Below, in pieces: positions 10,598 through 63,699 of a DNA stretch of 64,000 nt. A model generated the notes under the pieces. That model saw only the letters and a program-made list of their open reading frames with translations. It was not told the origin of the DNA and did no database searches. How positions within the stretch are numbered: the stretch's first letter is position 1; each line of letters opens with the position of its first letter. Where the stretch lies: the NCBI RefSeq assembly GCF_006345805.1, contig NC_043016.1:62001-126000 (forward strand), read 5' to 3'. Source of the DNA: Octopus sinensis (Eukaryota). A program made the translations under genes and the position numbers.

Positions 10598-10890
10598 CCT
10601 TTTACTTGTTTCAGTCATTTGACTGTGGCCATGCTGGAGCACTGCCTTTAGTCAAGCAAATCGACCCCAGGACTTTACTTTGTAAGCCCAGTACTTATTC
10701 AATCAGTTGCTTTTGCTGAACCGCTAAGTTAGAGGGACATAAGCACACCAGCATTGGTTGTCAAGCGACGTTGGTGGTTGGGGGGACAAACACAGATGCA
10801 CAAACATATACACATACTCACACACACACATTCATTCACACACACATACACGCACACACACATACACACACACTCACACACACGCACACA
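10598..10890 (-). mobile_element. S2 SINE, 3' half
   Basis: ttttacttgtttcagtcatttgactgtggccatgctggagcac matches the S2 tail. Confidence 0.85.
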
Positions 10891-10892
10891 CC

Positions 10893-11282
10893 TGGATCTT
10901 TCCTTCTCCTATGTTTCTGACGAAGAGCTCTGCTCGAAACGTTAAAGCCTCCTTCTTTACTTCTTTCCTGAGCTAGATAAGCTAAGAATTTCTCATTTCA
11001 CTTCTTGACCACTCGTACTACATTGGCCACTGACACTTAAAATGTATTATCTATTTAATAATCTGCTTGTTGATTCTTTTCGTGAGCTAAGCTGTTGATA
11101 TTGTCTCCCAAAATATAATCTTTTCATTTTTAGTCCTATCTCGTAATAATTCGTCCCTATGCGCTGATAATTTATTTCTTTTTTCTTTCTTTCTTTCTTT
11201 CTTACTTTGTTCCAATAATACTATATTTGTTCCACGTCCTCGCGTTGTGTATTTTTTTGTGCTTTCTTGTTTGGATTTTCCT
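10893..11282 (+). mobile_element. Penelope-like terminal pieces (10893-10975 and ~11185-11282) with a canonical minimal hammerhead core
   Basis: gttt CTGACGA a gagc tct gctc GAAAC gtt aaag at 10913-10947; 11200-11282 is the reverse-complement homolog of 6750-6830. Confidence 0.65.
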
Positions 11283-11382
11283 NNNNNNNNNNNNNNNNNN
11301 NNNNNNNNNNNNNNNNNNNNNNNNNNNNNNNNNNNNNNNNNNNNNNNNNNNNNNNNNNNNNNNNNNNNNNNNNNNNNNNNNN
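11283..11382. other. Assembly gap (100 N)
   Basis: Run of N. Confidence 1.
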
Positions 11383-12005
11383 CTGTTCAAGGTGTGCACA
11401 GAGCGATGAAACTGCCTGCATGCACTCGTCCAGCGTCCGTGCATTGCTGATCTGTGGAACATTACCGAACAGTTGTCACATGTAGTACGGATCCGTTTAT
11501 CAGCTGAGTCCATTGTGAGGATCGCCCGGTCGCCTTCTTTTGGCCGTGAAGAAAAGGTAGCGAAAGAGGTAGTGTGGTGAACGAGGATGGAAGGACTGAA
11601 GACAGACACTATCCTCTTCGGCCGAGCCCTCATTGACTTTTACAAGTTCTACTTGAAAAGGAAAGTGAGGGTAGAGAGGGAAGTACTTCCTCCAGGAACT
11701 TTATTGAAAGATAGATGGATGTTGCGAAAATGGCTCGTGTGAGTATTCGTCTCTAAGTCGGAGCTGCTAAAGGAAAGAAGGGTGCCTACTTGGCATGCTT
11801 TTGGCAGTTGGAGTGACCAGGATGTATAGGGTTCCCTGAATGGCCCTGGATGGAACTCCCTCATATTGGAGAATATTTTGTTTCATTTTTTGTTAAATGC
11901 TTTTGTTTTTATTTAGACGTTTTCTTTTTTAAACCCTACTTCTCCCATGTTTTGTATCGTCTCTATATGTTTTTGTATTCGGCCCTTGTGGCCAATAAAG
12001 AAAAG
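11383..12005 (+). mobile_element. Tx1/L1-like LINE 3' fragment
   Basis: CSRCAQSDET zinc-knuckle remnant homologous to 40870-41200; 3' end gcccttgtggccaataaagaaa followed by (ATT)n. Confidence 0.75.
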
Positions 12006-14248: not shown

Positions 14249-14484
14249 TGTGCGCGTGTGTGTGTGCGCGCGTGTGTGTGTGTACGTGTGTGTTTGTAAA
14301 TATATACACACATGCATTCAAATATTCATCTGATATCGTTTGCTGTACTGCATGCTTCATGAAAATTAGACAAATGGGTGCGGGAGAGTTGTTACTTCGC
14401 ACATACACACACGCATCATACACACACGAGTTATACACGTACACGCACAAACATATGTGCACATACTGATGCGTATATATATAT

Positions 14485-14529
<45 letters not shown>

Positions 14530-14560
14530 TGTGTGTGTGTGTGTGTGTGTGTGTGTGGTC
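13650..14560. repeat. Compound (TA)n/(TACA)n/(TG)n microsatellite zone
   Basis: Direct reading. Confidence 0.85.
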
Positions 14561-19655: not shown

Positions 19656-20415
19656 TTGCAGTTATGAATTCTGTTTCCCACAAGATTAAAATTAGTCACA
19701 GTTACGCTAACGATTCAACATCCTTCCCGACAGGCTAGAAATAGCAACAACATTTCATGCAAATCATATACCTATCATCTTAAAAGGGGTAAAAAAAAAA
19801 AAGGAACTAGATCACATAGGATATTGTTGCGCTTGAGAAACTCCTACTCAATAAGAAACGGGTCAGTCACGGCTGGAAACCCTGTGATTATAGTTATATC
19901 CTCAATAAGAGTTAACCTGAGGTTTTGACAACGTCAGCTACTACCTACGACAGAGCAACCCCTTATCCAGGATAAAGTTTATTTCACATCTGTGGAACGC
20001 TACGGAAACAGGATATTAGTTACCAGTTCTCAGGATCATTGCGATTTGAAAAATTACAAACTTTCACCGTATATTTATTTATTTATTTTATTTTTATTAT
20101 CATTAATTGATCTTTGCACTCCTGTAAGCCGTTTCAAGTAAACTTTCTGCACATCTGGTGGTAATTCATAATAAAAATCTACATCTGTGTAACTTTCTTG
20201 CATGGCAATGATTCGAATAAATGTATATGCCAAATAATTATTGACAGGAAAATTTTTTTGGCTATCTTTTGTTGCGGTTGCGGCTGCTGATGTTGTCGGT
20301 GTTGTTGTTGTTGTTGTTGATGATAATGATGATGGTGATGGTGATGATGATGCTGATGATGCTGACGATGATGATGATGATGATGACGATGTTGTTTCTT
20401 TGTGATGGTATTGAC

Positions 20416-20928
20416 GCAGGAGTGGCTGTGTGGTAAGTAGCTTGCTTACCAACCACATGGTTCCGGGTTCAGTCCTACTGCGTGGCACCTTGGGCGCAGA
20501 GGTGGTACCATGGCCAATGAGGTAAATCCGAGGCGTGGTTATTGCTAGTTGAAAACTTTGGGCAAGTGTCTCCTACTATAGCCTCGGGCCGACCAAAACC
20601 TTGTGAGTGGATTTGGTAGACGGAAACTGAAAAAAAAGCCCGTCGTATATATGTATATATATATATATTATATATATATATATATATATGTGTGTGTATG
20701 TGTGTGTGTTTATGTTTGTGTATCTGTGTTTGTCCCTCCAACATCACCTGACAACCGATGCTGGTGTGTTTACGTTCCATAACTTAGCGTTTCGGAAAAA
20801 GAGATCAATACAATAAATCGAGGCTTATAAAGAATAAGTTCTGGGGTCGATTTGCTCGACTAAAGGCAGTCTCCAGCATGGCCACAGTCAAAATGACTGG
20901 AACGAGTAAAAGAGTAAACGAGTAAAAG
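20416..20928 (+). mobile_element. S2 tRNA/CORE-type SINE with internal (TA)(TG) tract, interrupted by a U4 fragment
   Basis: A box tggctgtgtgg, B box ggttcagtcc, core ggcaccttgggcaagtgtc, tail gtcaaaatgactggaacgagtaaaag. Confidence 0.9.
20494..20559 (+). pseudogene. U4: U4 snRNA 5' fragment (about nt 7-70), retroposed
   Basis: gcgcagaggtggtaccatggccaatgaggtaaatccgaggcgtggttattgctagttgaaaacttt aligns by eye to metazoan U4 (GCGCAG..GCCAAUGAGG..CCGAGGCG..UUAUUGCUA.UUGAAAACUUU); flanked by a ttgggc duplication. Confidence 0.85.
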
Positions 20929-21211
20929 GGTATGATTGATGCTACTTTTATATTTGTTTTATAGGAAGGAATGTACTCACGACCTCTTTAGAGCCACCGG
21001 GTTGGGTGAGAAAGAAGGTTTGGTTTATGTTCCTTAATGCGACAGTTACATAAAAAAATATATTGGAAAGAAAGGCTTCCGCAAACCCAAGGTTTTAGGG
21101 TATGGTAATTTATGTGGAACCTGGTGTATGGGCGGCATGTGGCTGAAAAGAATTGGACAAACTCAAGGTACACGAGATTAGTCAACAGCTCAAATAGCGC
21201 GGCTTCTGCAA

Positions 21212-26825: not shown

Positions 26826-27150
26826 TGCGTGGCTGCGTGGGAAGAAACTTGCTTCTAATTACAGGGTTCTGGGTTCAGTCTCATTGCGTAGCACCTTCGA
26901 CAGGTGTCTTCTACTAAAGATTCAGGCCGATCAAAGCCTTGTGGGTAGATCTGGTAGAAGGAAACTGAAAGAAGCCCGTCGTATATATATATATGGGGGC
27001 ATTTGTGTAGGAGTATGTGTGTATGTTTGTGTGTGTGCGTGTGTCTTGTATCTATGTTTGTCCCCACCGCCACTTGACAACCGGAGTTGCTGTGTTTACA
27101 CACCGTAACTTAGCAGTTCAGCAACAGTTATCGATTGAATAAATACCAGG
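26826..27150 (+). mobile_element. Degraded S2 SINE
   Basis: gggttctgggttcagtc..agtgtcttctact..ggaaactgaaagaagcccgtcgtatatata. Confidence 0.75.
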
Positions 27151-31239: not shown

Positions 31240-31789
31240 GGTACATTAGGTTCTGTATCCACAAACTTACACAAAAACGTAGAAATACTTGGTTTGTGGA
31301 ATAAAAGCAAAAGGAACTGACCGCGGATTCTCCAAATCCAATCTATTAGCAAAGATTTGTAAGACATTCCAAAAATTCTCCACGTGAGATTCTTATATGA
31401 ATAGACACACGCCTGGGTGTATAATGTATCGACAGTTCAACCAACACAACAACTCGACCACATTTTCACAAAAACCGGGAACTCTCATAACTCAAAACAT
31501 CTTGTTGCTTTGATAGGAACTGACTTGAACTCTCTCAAGAATTTAAATACATTGAAAAATACGTTCATATATGCATACATACGTACATACGTAGATACGT
31601 ACACACATATACATACATACATACATACATACAAACATACATACATACATACATAAATACATACATACATACAAATATACATACATACATACATAAATAT
31701 ATACATACATACATGGCCCTTCGTTATCGAGTATGGCCATGCACGAAGTTTAATCAGTGTTGTTATCGTGCAATGCCTGTGCAAGAAGG

Positions 31790-52584: not shown

Positions 52585-53752
52585 CTACCCGTCTGTCTGA
52601 TAGACAATGGGTCGCGCCAAGGGTGGGGCCTACTTTGATGATGAGCAGCGTCTGCTGTGACTGAACAGTCCAACTCTAGAGTGGCAGTCCCTGGTACAGT
52701 TGCTGCACACGAACATCGATGGGTACGTGTGGGGTGTTGCTGCAGTTGTCCTCCTCCTGTCCCGCCTGTCCGACCACAGCTGTGCTCTCCTTTCCTCAGC
52801 CATGGAAACGCCTTTCCTCACTGTCCGACGCCAGGCAGAGCGGTCAGCAGCTGTTACCTCCCACGTGTCCACACAGATGTTGGCAGTCCTCAGGTCGCGC
52901 TTGCACACATCCCTGTATCGTAGCTGTGGACGTCCCTTGGGTCGGGATCCCGTGGTGAGTTCGCTGTACAGGATGTCTTTAGGCATGCGACCGTCCTGCA
53001 TGCGGCAGACGTGTCCGAGCCAGTGCAGTCGTCTCCGCACGAGGAGGGCATGCATGCTTGGCATATTAGTCTGTTCTAGGATGACTCCGTTTGGTACTCG
53101 GTCCTTCCAGGAGATGCCAAGGATCCGTCGAAGACACCGCATGTGGAAGCCGCTGAGGCGGCATTCTTGCCGGGTGTATGTTGTCCAGCTCTCGCTGCCG
53201 TAGAGTAGGGTGCTCAGCACGCAGGCTCGGTACACTGCGATCTTGGTGGTTATTGCGAGCATGTTGTTTTCCCACATTCTCCTGGAGAGCTTAGCCATGG
53301 CAGCAGCAGCCTTCCCAATCCGTCTGTTCAGCTCCGGCTCGAGGGACAGGCTGCTGGAGACCGTCGATCCCAGGTAAGTGAACTCGTTCACCACCTGCAA
53401 GCTGTGGTCGCCGACACTGATGCTGGGGACCCCTCCGACGTCATGTCCCATGATCTCTGTCTTTTTCAGGCCGATGGTAAAGCCGAACTCTTGGCAGGCA
53501 TCCGCCAGGGAGCTGACCAGCCTCTGGAGACCCGGCTGGTTGTGTGATGTTAGGGCGGCATCGTCAGCAAAGAGGATCTCTCTGATCAGAACCTGACGGA
53601 CTTTGGTCTTAGCTCTGAGGCGCGCAAGATTGAACAATCCACCATCAGCCCAGGTGTGGAGGAACACTCCGTCGTCGGACGTTCTGAAGGCATAGGACAA
53701 GACAAGGGAGAAGAAAATTCTGAAGAGCGTCGGCGCCAGAACGCAACCCTGC
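52585..53752 (-). mobile_element. Young 5'-truncated RTE LINE (third lineage) inserted in (TA)n
   Basis: (TA)n on both flanks; short 3' UTR; GC-rich; frame uninterrupted. Confidence 0.93.
52630..53752 (-). pseudogene. RTE ORF2 C-terminal part: RT motifs, thumb and C2H2-type finger; no genuine start codon
   Basis: QGCVLAPTLF, ILFADD, EFTYLGS, TLLYGSESW, RRLHWLGHVCRM, GRPQLRYRD, FVCSNCTRDCHSRVGLFSHSRRC; the N-terminal MITVIYIYI of the ORF track comes from flanking TA repeat. Confidence 0.92.
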
Positions 53753-53778
53753 GTATATATATATATATATATATATAT

Positions 53779-54089
53779 AACCGTGATCACCGTGCACGAC
53801 CAGACTACCAGATGTTGCTACACATCGCTGGTCACAATGCGTTTCGCATTGTTTTAGCCTTCAAATGACGCCACCCCGCTGGCTAAGCGAGCAGGCCAAC
53901 ATAAGAAAGAGTAAGAGAAAGTTGTGGCGAAAGAGTACAACAGGGATCGGTACCACCCCCTACCGGAGCCTCGTGGAGCTTTAGGTGTTTTTGCTCAATA
54001 AACAATCACAACGCCTGGTCTGGGAATCGAAACCGCGATCCTACAACCGCGAGTTCGCTGCCCTAACCACTGGGCCATTGGGCCTCCAC
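53779..54089 (-). mobile_element. S3 SINE, tail type c
   Basis: Same head and core as 17650-17833; different tail ending gtgcacggtgatcacgg-(TA)n. Confidence 0.85.
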
Positions 54090-60914: not shown

Positions 60915-61290
60915 GTAGGAGTGGCTGTGTGGTAAGTATCTTGCTTACGAACCACATAGTTCCGGGTTCAGTCCCACTGCGTGGCACCTTGGGTAAGCCT
61001 TGTGAGTGAATTTGGTAGACGGAAACTGAAAGAAACCCGTCGTATATATGTATATATATGTATGTGCGTGTTTGTGTGTCTGTGTTTGTCCCCCCAACAT
61101 CGCTTGACAACCGATGCTGGTGTGTTTATGTCCCCGTAACTTAGCGGTTCGGCAAAAAAGACACCAATAAAATAAGTACTAGGCTTACAAAGAATAAGTC
61201 CTGAGGTCGATTTGATCGACTAAAGGCAGTGCTCCAGCATGGCCACAGTCACATGACTGAAACAAGTAAAAGAGTAAAAGAGAAAAGAGT
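60915..61290 (+). mobile_element. S2 SINE with short core deletion
   Basis: ggagtggctgtgtggtaag head; gtcacatgactgaaacaagtaaaag tail. Confidence 0.88.
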
Positions 61291-61981
61291 ATGTATACAT
61301 GTATGTATATACGTGTATATATATACATTTGCATATATAGGTATTGCATCTATGCATGCAATATATATGTATATATACATATATATATGTATACACATTT
61401 ATTCGCATATGTATATACATGCATTGCTTCCAACCCACTTACATACATACATACATTAATGCATACATACATACATACATACATACATACATACATACAT
61501 ACATACATACATACATACATACATACATGCATGCATGCATATATACATACATGTGTATTGACATAAAATGCAAAAATATTCTGTCAGTTTTCATTACACG
61601 TGTTTGCCTGTAATTGGAAGCAAATTTCTGAATATATTTTAGACATATATTATTTATATTAATTTTACTTTACCGCTGAATTTCTTTTCATCTCTGACAA
61701 ATTATAAACATAATTCATTAGCTTAATGATGCTACTAAACTCATGGGAATGTCATTTTTTCTTCTTGTGACGCCATAGTGTCTTGGATAAAGTTTTATGT
61801 ACATAAATGAAAGTGACCGATGCAAGATAAGAGTGAAACGACGTCTAGCGTGCGACTGCAATTAATAATGTAACAACTTGAAATCTAATTTAAATTTCCT
61901 TAATCAGTGTTGATAGTAGGTGACAGAGTAAAATTCTCATTTACATTCTCATGTAAGATTATATACACTAATTAGTAATCT

Positions 61982-62281: not shown

Positions 62282-62363
62282 CGACGGGCTTCTTTTCAGT
62301 TTCTGTCTACCAAATCCACTCACATGTGGCTGGTAAGCAAGCTACTTACCACACAGCCACACC
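62025..62363 (-). mobile_element. S2 SINE with internal deletion
   Basis: Tail and head present, B box and core missing. Confidence 0.82.
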
Positions 62364-62445
62364 TAATCATAATAATAAATAACAACAACAACGACGACGA
62401 CGACGAAAACAACAACAACAGCAACAACAATTATAATAATAATAA

Positions 62446-63699
62446 CCTTCCCAGAGCTCAGGGAGGTCGAGGTTTGATCCAGCTTGAACTTACATACAAA
62501 ACCACCACAATCGGACTGGCCAAATACCTTGAAGCAACCAAGGATTGGATGCTAAAACTTGTTGAAAAACATGAGAGACTGAAAAGACTTCACTCTATTC
62601 TCAAAGAGAGCAAAGAATTCGCTGCTGATCTCCTAGATACCCACCAGATTGATCAGGCTGAAGGAAATGCGCCAACTGCAGCTGCAAAGGAAATAAAATT
62701 AATTGCAAAGACAAAAGCACATGAAAATTTAGCTAGCAGATGGGAACAGAAACCTCTCCATGGCAAGTATGTGGCCCGTAGCAAACAAGCTGATGCCAAC
62801 CAGACACACACGCACCAATGGTTACAAAGCTCAGGGTTAAAAGCAGAGAGTGAAGGTTTCATATTAGCTGCTCAAGACCAAAGCTTATTAACCCGGAACT
62901 ACCAAGCCAATGTGATAAAAAATGGAGCTGACCCAAAATGCCGATTCTGTAACGATGAGATTGAAACATTAGACCACCTAATCTCAGGGTGTAGAGTCTT
63001 AGCACCTTCAGAATATAAAGCAAGCCATGACAGAGTCGGCCAGTATTTACATTGGACAATATGTCGGTATTATAAAATCAAAACCGCTGACAAATGGTAT
63101 AAACACCATCCTGAAGCTGTGACTGAGGGAGAAAATGTGTCGATTCTATGGGACTTCCCCGTGCAGACCGACAAGACTATAAAAGCTAATAAGCCGGATA
63201 CTATTATAAAAGATCAGACAAAAAGGATGTGTTTATTAATTGACATGAGTATTCCCGGTGATCACAATATAGCGGCGAAAGAATTTGACAAGATTAGTAA
63301 ATATAAAGACCTTGCTAATAAAAGTTGAAAAAATGTGGCATCTCAAGGCGACTACAGTACCAGTGATTGTAGGATCTCTAGGAATGATGAAAAAAGGTAT
63401 TGAAACCTATTTGAAAATGATTCCAGGCTTACCATCCCTACAGGAAGTGCAAAAAATCGTATTAACTGGAACGGCTCATGTACTGAGAAGAGCACTATCG
63501 CTGTGAAAATAACATCCATCCATGAATTTATTTATTTATTAATTTTTAAATACATATTTTATCTGTGAATTTGCGCGTGTAATCTGGGAATGCATACAAT
63601 GCCCTTCTCTGCCCTGGGTGTATGGAAAACACTTGGTGAGAAACGGAAGAAAATTTGAAGAAAGAAGGAAAAAACATAATAATAATAATAACAATAATG
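62446..63699 (+). mobile_element. 5'-truncated R4/Dong-like LINE between (AAT)n tracts; C-terminal ORF with one frameshift near 63315
   Basis: GGRGL, KPLHGKY, FILAAQDQSLLTRNY, CRFCNDEIETLDHLISGC (CCHC), HD, KPDTIIKD..LIDMSIP..KISKY (PD..D..K nuclease), VPVIVGSLG..VLRRALSL*; (TAA)n tail at 63677-63699. Confidence 0.93.

Follow-up and report, generated by a model that had tools for sequence, protein, structure and literature searches.

A composite SINE copy with a 62-nt insert

Positions 20419-20928 of the window (the whole 64 kb stretch of DNA analysed here) are one copy of a ∼500-510-bp composite SINE, probably an octopod SINE. The element is made up of a tRNA-like head and body (∼165 bp), a (TA)n/(TG)n microsatellite and a ∼200-bp 3′ module ending in GTAAAAGA-type repeats, and its body is interrupted by a 62-nt insert derived from U4 snRNA (Table 1). 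Its start at 20419 was set by analogy with the copy at 60917, for which a flanking repeat of that copy marks the boundary. The two arms of the probable target-site duplication around the element at 20419-20928 differ by indels of 3 nt and 1 nt and by a single C/T substitution in a CpG. Neither ARAGORN nor Rfam returned a tRNA call for the SINE head. In a regex scan of 20415-21000, T runs of at least four were absent from the element and the U4 insert alike.

Relative to a rough consensus of the six window copies, the head and body of the host SINE differ at 4 of 165 positions and the 3′ module at 15 of 188, which places the copy ∼5% off the consensus overall. This divergence, together with a probable target-site duplication that is separate and degraded, fits a SINE that was resident before the U4 sequence arrived.

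Besides this copy, BLAST and MAFFT identified five or more SINE copies in the window that include the head. Two of these (heads at 60917-61035 and 62364-62290) have internal body deletions, roughly at consensus positions 90-121 and 51-124, which remove or adjoin the site that carries the U4 insertion at 20496. A further copy of the 3′ module, at 10599-10817 (−), ends in a (GATA)n-type rather than a GTAAAAGA-type tail; a head query gave no adjacent match, and this copy is therefore probably a 5′-truncated SINE. A full-text literature search for strings from the SINE or the insert gave no match. The antisense ORFs over the insert (U4 plus SINE body, and U4 plus SINE head) had no match in the protein database searched, their SINE-only parts included, a result that is uninformative on copy number. 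Exact look-ups of ORFs from the window returned no record. Pattern scans for the U4 core gave no match in metagenome contigs or in prokaryote genome contigs, and a SINE control pattern likewise had none in the metagenome contigs.

Table 1. Features of the interrupted SINE copy and other copies of the element in the window
Feature	Position	Strand	Evidence
Probable left target-site duplication of host SINE (GGTATTGACGCA)	20407-20418	+	Left and right flanks aligned locally
Host SINE, 5′ segment preceding the insertion	20419-20495	+	Alignment with other window copies
A-box-like motif TGGCTGTGTGG	20423-20433	+	Equals SINE family consensus
B-box-like motif GGTTCCGGGTTCAGTCC	20459-20475	+	Equals family consensus; recurs in five copies
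Left copy of 6-bp duplication, TTGGGC	20490-20495	+	SINE consensus has TTGGGC once here
U4 snRNA-derived insert, 62 nt	20496-20557	+	RF00015, 59.4 / 59.3 bits; in no other window SINE copy
U4 5′ stem-loop (ACCAUGGCC ... GGCGUGGU)	20507-20539	+	Covariance model (CM) structure line <<<<<-<<<-----<<<___>>>-->>>>>>>>
k-turn: GCC / AAU bulge / GA / GG / loop UAAAU / CC / GA / GGC	20513-20534	+	CM alignment
U4 stem I (U6-pairing) region and start of central single-stranded region, UAUUGCUAGUUGAAAACU	20540-20557	+	RF00015 alignment
Right copy of 6-bp duplication, TTGGGC	20558-20563	+	Sequence and alignment
Host SINE body, resuming exactly at the break (AAGTGTCTCCTACTATAGCC...GCCCGTCG)	20564-20649	+	BLAST, alignment
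Internal (TA)n/(TG)n microsatellite of composite SINE	20650-20727	+	Between the two modules in every copy
SINE 3′ module and GTAAAAGA-type tail	20728-20928	+	BLAST and alignment; same module after the head in 6/6 copies
Probable right target-site duplication of host SINE (GGTATGATTGATGCTA)	20929-20944	+	Local alignment of flanks
First run of at least four Ts downstream of SINE head, potential Pol III terminator	20946-20949	+	Regex scan of 20415-21000
Other SINE copy	51609-51218	−	Head match 51609-51461
Other SINE copy	52510-52088	−	Head match 52510-52378
Other SINE copy	26829-27144	+	Head match 26829-26973
Other SINE copy	60917-61293	+	Head match 60917-61035
Other SINE copy	62364-62021	−	Head match 62364-62290

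The insert is a 5′ fragment of U4 snRNA

We searched the whole window against Rfam 15 with cmscan at the gathering threshold (GA). The sole match above threshold was RF00015 (U4) at 20486-20643 (+), with 59.4 bits against a GA of 46 and E = 1e-10, a score far beyond chance. In this alignment the posteriors stay near 1 only up to ∼20562; beyond that point the U4 3′ stem-loop and Sm site are stretched across the SINE, where the alignment is gapped, contains pairs flagged as non-standard and has posteriors between 0.2 and 0.7. When 20400-20570 was scanned alone, 59.3 bits (E = 3e-13) were obtained from model positions 1-83, and the match was flagged as 3′-truncated. Model positions 84-138 thus contribute 0.1 bit, the alignment gaps falling in the Sm site, and since positions 1-83 by themselves account for 59.3 bits the whole U4 signal is that of a 5′ fragment. 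A full-length diverged U4 gene, corresponding to the 1-138 alignment, was ruled out: its 3′ half consists of SINE letters that contribute nothing to the score. Down to E ≤ 1 the Rfam scan gave no U4 match in the other SINE copies of the window and no other snRNA-like match in the window.

The U4 homology runs from GCGCAG to GAAAACUUU (20494-20560) and corresponds to U4 nt ∼7/9 to 70/72, with 81% identity to the Rfam consensus over 64 nt. Against the human U4 sequence the identity is provisionally 83%. The core of the insert, CCAATGAGGTAAATCCGAGGC, occurs once in the window when three mismatches are allowed.

Within the fragment, the 5′ stem-loop has every pair of the model filled and Infernal flagged no non-standard pair, while the letters of the k-turn motif equal the consensus throughout (C-stem GCC/GGC, 3-nt bulge, tandem G.A/A.G and NC-stem). 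Compared with the Rfam consensus, one pair of the stem-loop has both of its bases altered (g-c to A-U) and another has a single altered base (c-g to U-G). Such changes would be expected of a copy of a functional, lineage-specific U4, whereas random decay would break pairs. The intact k-turn reflects a faithful copy of functional U4 and little decay after insertion, not selection. Further 3′, UAUUGCUAGUUGAAAACU is identical to the Rfam consensus at 18/18 positions (posterior '*'), and it is within this stretch that the truncation point of the fragment falls. The U4 sequence ends at GAAAACU(UU), in the region between stem I and the 3′ stem-loop that the covariance model marks as unpaired (','), and SINE sequence follows directly.

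At the other end most of the stem II strand, which pairs with U6, is present; U4 nt 1-6/8 are missing and the bases 5′ of 20494 are SINE consensus, so that U4/U6 stem II is left incomplete by the 5′ truncation of 6-8 nt. The RF00015 alignment placed neither a 3′ stem-loop nor an Sm site (AAUUUUUG) in the insert, and inspection of the sequence found no poly(A) tail, no non-templated junction bases and no U4 gene flank at either end. A snRNA promoter and 3′ box of its own are likewise absent, the immediate flanks on both sides being SINE. Because it is without the U4 promoter, the Sm site and the 3′ stem-loop, the insert cannot act as U4 and is a pseudogene fragment, not a U4 gene. The minimum free energy (MFE) fold of the insert alone gives the U4 5′ hairpin (z = 0.04) and that of the 231-nt chimeric context is without it (z = −0.9), z-scores that are uninformative, which is to be expected of a k-turn RNA.

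These results bear out most of the original prediction, which had been made from the letters of the window. It had proposed a U4 5′ fragment of nt ∼7-70, naming an RF00015 scan around the insert as the check and the lack of a significant match as the refutation; the match exceeds the gathering score in the local scan as in the whole-window scan and is placed at nt 7/9 to 70/72. Its description of a 5′ stem-loop with the Snu13/15.5K k-turn fully kept, of stem I, and of an insert that finishes in GAAAACUUU agrees with the alignment. The stem II region that it had also listed is there for most of its strand, but is incomplete for want of U4 nt 1-6/8.

Insertion site and target duplication

The 62 nt of the insert separate two perfect copies of TTGGGC. 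The match between these copies extends no further in either direction, which fixes the length of the duplication at exactly 6 bp. The insertion lies ∼20 nt downstream of the B-box-like motif; the U4 piece begins 77 nt into the element, past the tRNA-like head, and shares the orientation of the SINE. In the other window copies that cover the site, BLAST and MAFFT recovered it uninterrupted as GGCAC(C/T)-TTGG(G/T)N-AAGTGTC, and the insert is present in 0/5 of the other head-containing copies. We could therefore rule out that it is a normal part of the SINE family, as it is missing from the other window copies and RF00015 matches none of them; membership of an S2 subfamily was the outcome that had been named beforehand as contradicting the original prediction. 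The ∼62 extra bases that the prediction had seen between duplicated ttgggc motifs were correctly described and correctly placed, at 20490-20495 and 20558-20563. Its statement that they interrupt the core of a SINE is right as to the SINE, but the site is in the body of a ∼510-bp composite and in no 'core domain' in the technical sense.

Both junctions permit a short overlap. On the left, the last GC of TTGGGC may belong just as well to U4, as its nt 7-8; on the right, the same holds for the first TT and U4 nt 71-72, if CUUU is the native U4 sequence there. Each junction may thus overlap by 2 nt, and by the Roth formula, as used by Doucet et al., an overlap of at least this length has a probability of 0.16 at each by chance. 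The overlaps are compatible with microhomology-guided priming and joining, and are not significant alone.

Origin of the insert

The sequence shows directly that the piece derives from U4, where its boundaries lie, that 6 bp are duplicated, that sister copies have the empty site and that neither poly(A) nor U4 flanks are present. The best reading of this anatomy is a tailless retropseudogene, 3′-truncated and slightly 5′-truncated, which is nested in an older SINE copy and was dead on arrival. We consider it probable that a U4 fragment entered a resident SINE copy by a one-off retro-insertion, since the insert consists of mature-RNA sequence only, is without an A-tail, has its 3′ end in a single-stranded region, and is flanked by an exact duplication in a target that is otherwise intact. 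From the same anatomy we infer an RNA intermediate, involvement of a LINE RT/endonuclease (EN), the site of priming and the one-off status of the event. Retro-insertion is supported by the position of the fragment, wholly inside mature U4 RNA, and by the existence of LINE RT genes in this genome, represented in the window by an RVT_1 ORF at 52630-53790 (−).

In such an event the host's own U4 snRNA would have been reverse-transcribed from nt ∼7/9 to 70/72 only, and the cDNA would have integrated at a staggered break in the SINE already at the locus, fill-in of the stagger doubling TTGGGC. The most likely route would be target-primed reverse transcription (TPRT) by LINE-encoded endonuclease/RT. 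If so, the bottom strand would first have been nicked at 5′-GCCCAA/GGTGCC-3′, and the top strand 6 nt away. The exposed ...CCCAA-3′ end could then have paired with UU in the single-stranded central region of U4 (GAAAACUUU), a region that would be free of U6 and of the proteins of the 5′ stem-loop. Synthesis of cDNA would have copied stem I, then the 5′ stem-loop and the greater part of stem II, after which the cDNA end would have been joined upstream by microhomology at the 2-nt GC overlap, with loss of U4 nt 1-6/8.

Some of the evidence speaks against this route, at least in its L1 form. The nick site is not of the L1 type (TTTT/AA), and a target-site duplication (TSD) of 6 bp compares with the 8-30 nt quoted as typical of L1 (PMC5322556). 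The GTAAAAGA tail of the SINE suggests a LINE partner of the stringent type, as against the relaxed L1 linked to tailless retropseudogenes, and the 2-nt overlaps would arise by chance in 16% of cases at each junction, that at the 3′ end moreover assuming CUUU in the native U4. A LINE other than L1, or a random break, could explain the nick site.

A random break would also be the starting point for endonuclease-independent capture, in which a U4 cDNA or RNA fragment produced by any cellular RT served as end-joining filler at a chance staggered double-strand break. The short 6-bp duplication and a break site that is not L1-like fit this explanation, and a fragment truncated at either end with no more than 2 nt of microhomology is what end joining typically leaves. 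Templated sequence insertions, in which distant transcribed sequence is found at repaired breaks, are a known phenomenon that counts in its favour. So does the ability of RT/EN machinery to use pre-existing breaks (PMC5322556). We nevertheless regard capture of this kind as unlikely. Endonuclease-independent insertions usually come without a TSD and often with target deletions, whereas here the target is perfectly conserved and duplicated, and the 3′ end lies where internal priming of the TPRT type is expected.

A further alternative, which we think quite unlikely, is that the RT switched template twice while the SINE itself was being retrotransposed. It would have left the SINE RNA for U4 RNA at the UU overlap, read U4 as far back as nt ∼7 and re-entered the SINE RNA through the GC overlap at a point lying 6 nt 3′ of its departure, so that the apparent duplication of TTGGGC would be re-copied template and not a TSD; the chimera may or may not then have become the master copy of a U4-bearing SINE subfamily. 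The 2-nt overlaps at both junctions would be usable for re-annealing, the U4 piece is in SINE orientation, and with A- and B-box-like motifs intact and no T4 terminator inside, transcription of the whole would in principle be possible. L1 is documented to switch onto snRNA templates, giving U6/L1 and snRNA/Alu chimeras, and such switching has been proposed for the birth of the U1/U2-headed SINEU families (PMC4494074, PMC4476161). However, two jumps back to nearly the same template position are less parsimonious than an insertion with a TSD, the known chimeras carry the snRNA at the 5′ end and not internally (PMC4494074), and none of the five other window copies contains the insert. Finally, a DNA-level event (an ectopic repair patch from a U4 gene) or an assembly or chimeric-read artefact is hardly credible, for although a 62-nt internal piece alone cannot tell an RNA from a DNA source and the window is not free of assembly gaps (there is an N run within 11202-11633), the clean junctions and exact 6-bp target duplication are unlike misassembly, U4 flanking DNA is absent and the gap is 9 kb away.

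Comparison with known snRNA-derived insertions

Retro-insertion of a tailless U4 fragment has its closest counterpart in mammals, where the original prediction had placed 3′-truncated U4 pseudogenes with short direct repeats; the anatomy of the insert fits the published class of TSD-flanked, 3′-truncated snRNA pseudogenes (PMC4476161, PMC5322556). In the human genome 3′-truncated tailless snRNA retropseudogenes are the majority of dispersed snRNA copies, their truncations clustering in single-stranded segments and their ends showing 3′-junction complementarity and TSDs (PMC4476161, PMC5322556). They have been described as class III by Denison and Weiner and as Group III by Doucet et al. 2015 (PMC4476161), and under the name of tailless retropseudogenes by Schmitz 2004 and Noll 2015 (PMC5322556). 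Like them, the insert comprises only the 5′ part of its snRNA, has no poly(A), breaks off inside a single-stranded segment, is surrounded by a TSD and is devoid of gene flanks. The short complementarity at the 3′ junction of the mammalian class may have an equivalent here in the 2-nt TT overlap, which presupposes CUUU in the native U4 and, for 2 nt or more, has a chance probability of 0.16.

The differences from the mammalian class are several. The insert is in a non-mammalian and probably non-vertebrate host, its nick site is not TTTT/AA and its TSD is 6 bp, it is nested inside a SINE, and it starts at nt 7-9, unlike the 'perfect' tailless forms, which start at nt 1. Tailless retropseudogenes are moreover reported to track 'relaxed' L1, in therians, in anole and, in small numbers, in maize, the published surveys finding the class only where such an L1 is active (PMC5322556); the U4 insert would lie outside those systems.

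With the snRNA/LINE and snRNA/Alu chimeras made by template switching (Buzdin 2002 and Garcia-Perez 2007, as cited in PMC4494074 and PMC4476161) the locus shares a same-orientation fusion and microhomology at the junctions. In those chimeras the snRNA is usually full-length and lies 5′ of a 5′-truncated L1 or Alu, with one TSD around the chimera, whereas the U4 fragment is doubly truncated, lies inside the SINE and has a duplication of its own. A second parallel is with the crocodilian SINEU families (Kojima 2015, PMC4494074), which are likewise SINE-type elements with sequence derived from a spliceosomal snRNA. SINEU elements form multi-copy families with U1/U2-derived 5′ heads and a shared structure; here the U4 piece is internal, the head is that of a tRNA-like SINE and one copy is known, and the chimeric element is not SINEU-like. 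The insert resembles a functional U4 gene (RF00015) in its intact stem I sequence, in an equally intact 5′ stem-loop with the consensus Snu13/15.5K k-turn, and in a score above GA; it differs in having neither nt 1-6/8, the 3′ stem-loop, the Sm site nor a snRNA promoter context.

Possible transcription and significance

It is possible that a Pol III transcript of the element, if made, would read through the U4 piece. Taken further, the chimera would be a transcribed master copy, a tRNA-headed SINE with an internal U4 k-turn module that gave rise to a small subfamily and whose RNAs recruit Snu13/15.5K (perhaps Prp31) or pair with U6 via stem I. We judge this highly improbable, and both the functional and the founder-subfamily ideas are unlikely ones for the chimera. 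Were they true, this would be the first U4-bearing SINE and a source of k-turn non-coding RNAs in the lineage. In a weaker version, a LINE with relaxed template choice may make tailless retropseudogenes of small RNAs outside the L1 systems of therians and lizards.

The locus is a clean, textbook-style case of nested retroposition, a TSD-flanked snRNA fragment in a SINE with the empty target preserved in sister copies. Its wider value is modest and taxonomic and, if the host is a cephalopod, concerns whether one of its LINEs, for example of the RTE type, also takes up cellular RNAs by internal priming. The intact k-turn would be important only if the chimera is transcribed or multi-copy.

Neighbouring features of the window

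Directly upstream of the host SINE, at 20275-20395, is a long compound (GTT)n/(GAT)n microsatellite that produces long artefactual ORFs on both strands. Beyond it, the non-repetitive end of an ORF at 20075-20260 (−), terminating in …FPVNNYLAYTFIRIIAMQESYTDVDFYYELPPDVQKVYLKRLTGVQRSINDNKNKINK*, looks truly coding, perhaps as a terminal exon lying ∼160 bp away from the SINE; Pfam gave no match for it. The N run at ∼11300-11410, inside the ORF at 11202-11633, is translated as X and is an assembly gap. Sub-threshold Rfam matches to mir-297, mir-466, mir-3149 and SCARNA7 (31564-31630, 61349-61528, 14256-14556 and others) were rejected as composition artefacts because they lie on TG/TA microsatellites and score well below the gathering thresholds.

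Two ORFs of the window relate to non-LTR retrotransposons. At 62324-63328 (+), a 334-aa ORF begins in an antisense SINE head (MWLVSKLLTTQPHL) and enters the C-terminal region of a non-LTR retrotransposon, with weak zf-RVT and DUF5891 matches below the Pfam cut-offs. The ORF at 52630-53790 (−) encodes 386 aa with an RVT_1 domain (Pfam), and its best matches, ∼66% identical, are LINE reverse transcriptases of corals, sea urchin, amphioxus, crustaceans and a gastropod; one match bears the name of C. elegans F52C9.6, pointing to an element of RTE-like type. Two large contigs carrying relatives of this LINE RT contained no copy of the SINE or of the U4 fragment. In the window, the SINE copy at 52510-52088 (−) starts ∼120 bp downstream of the stop codon of the RVT_1 ORF, on the same strand.
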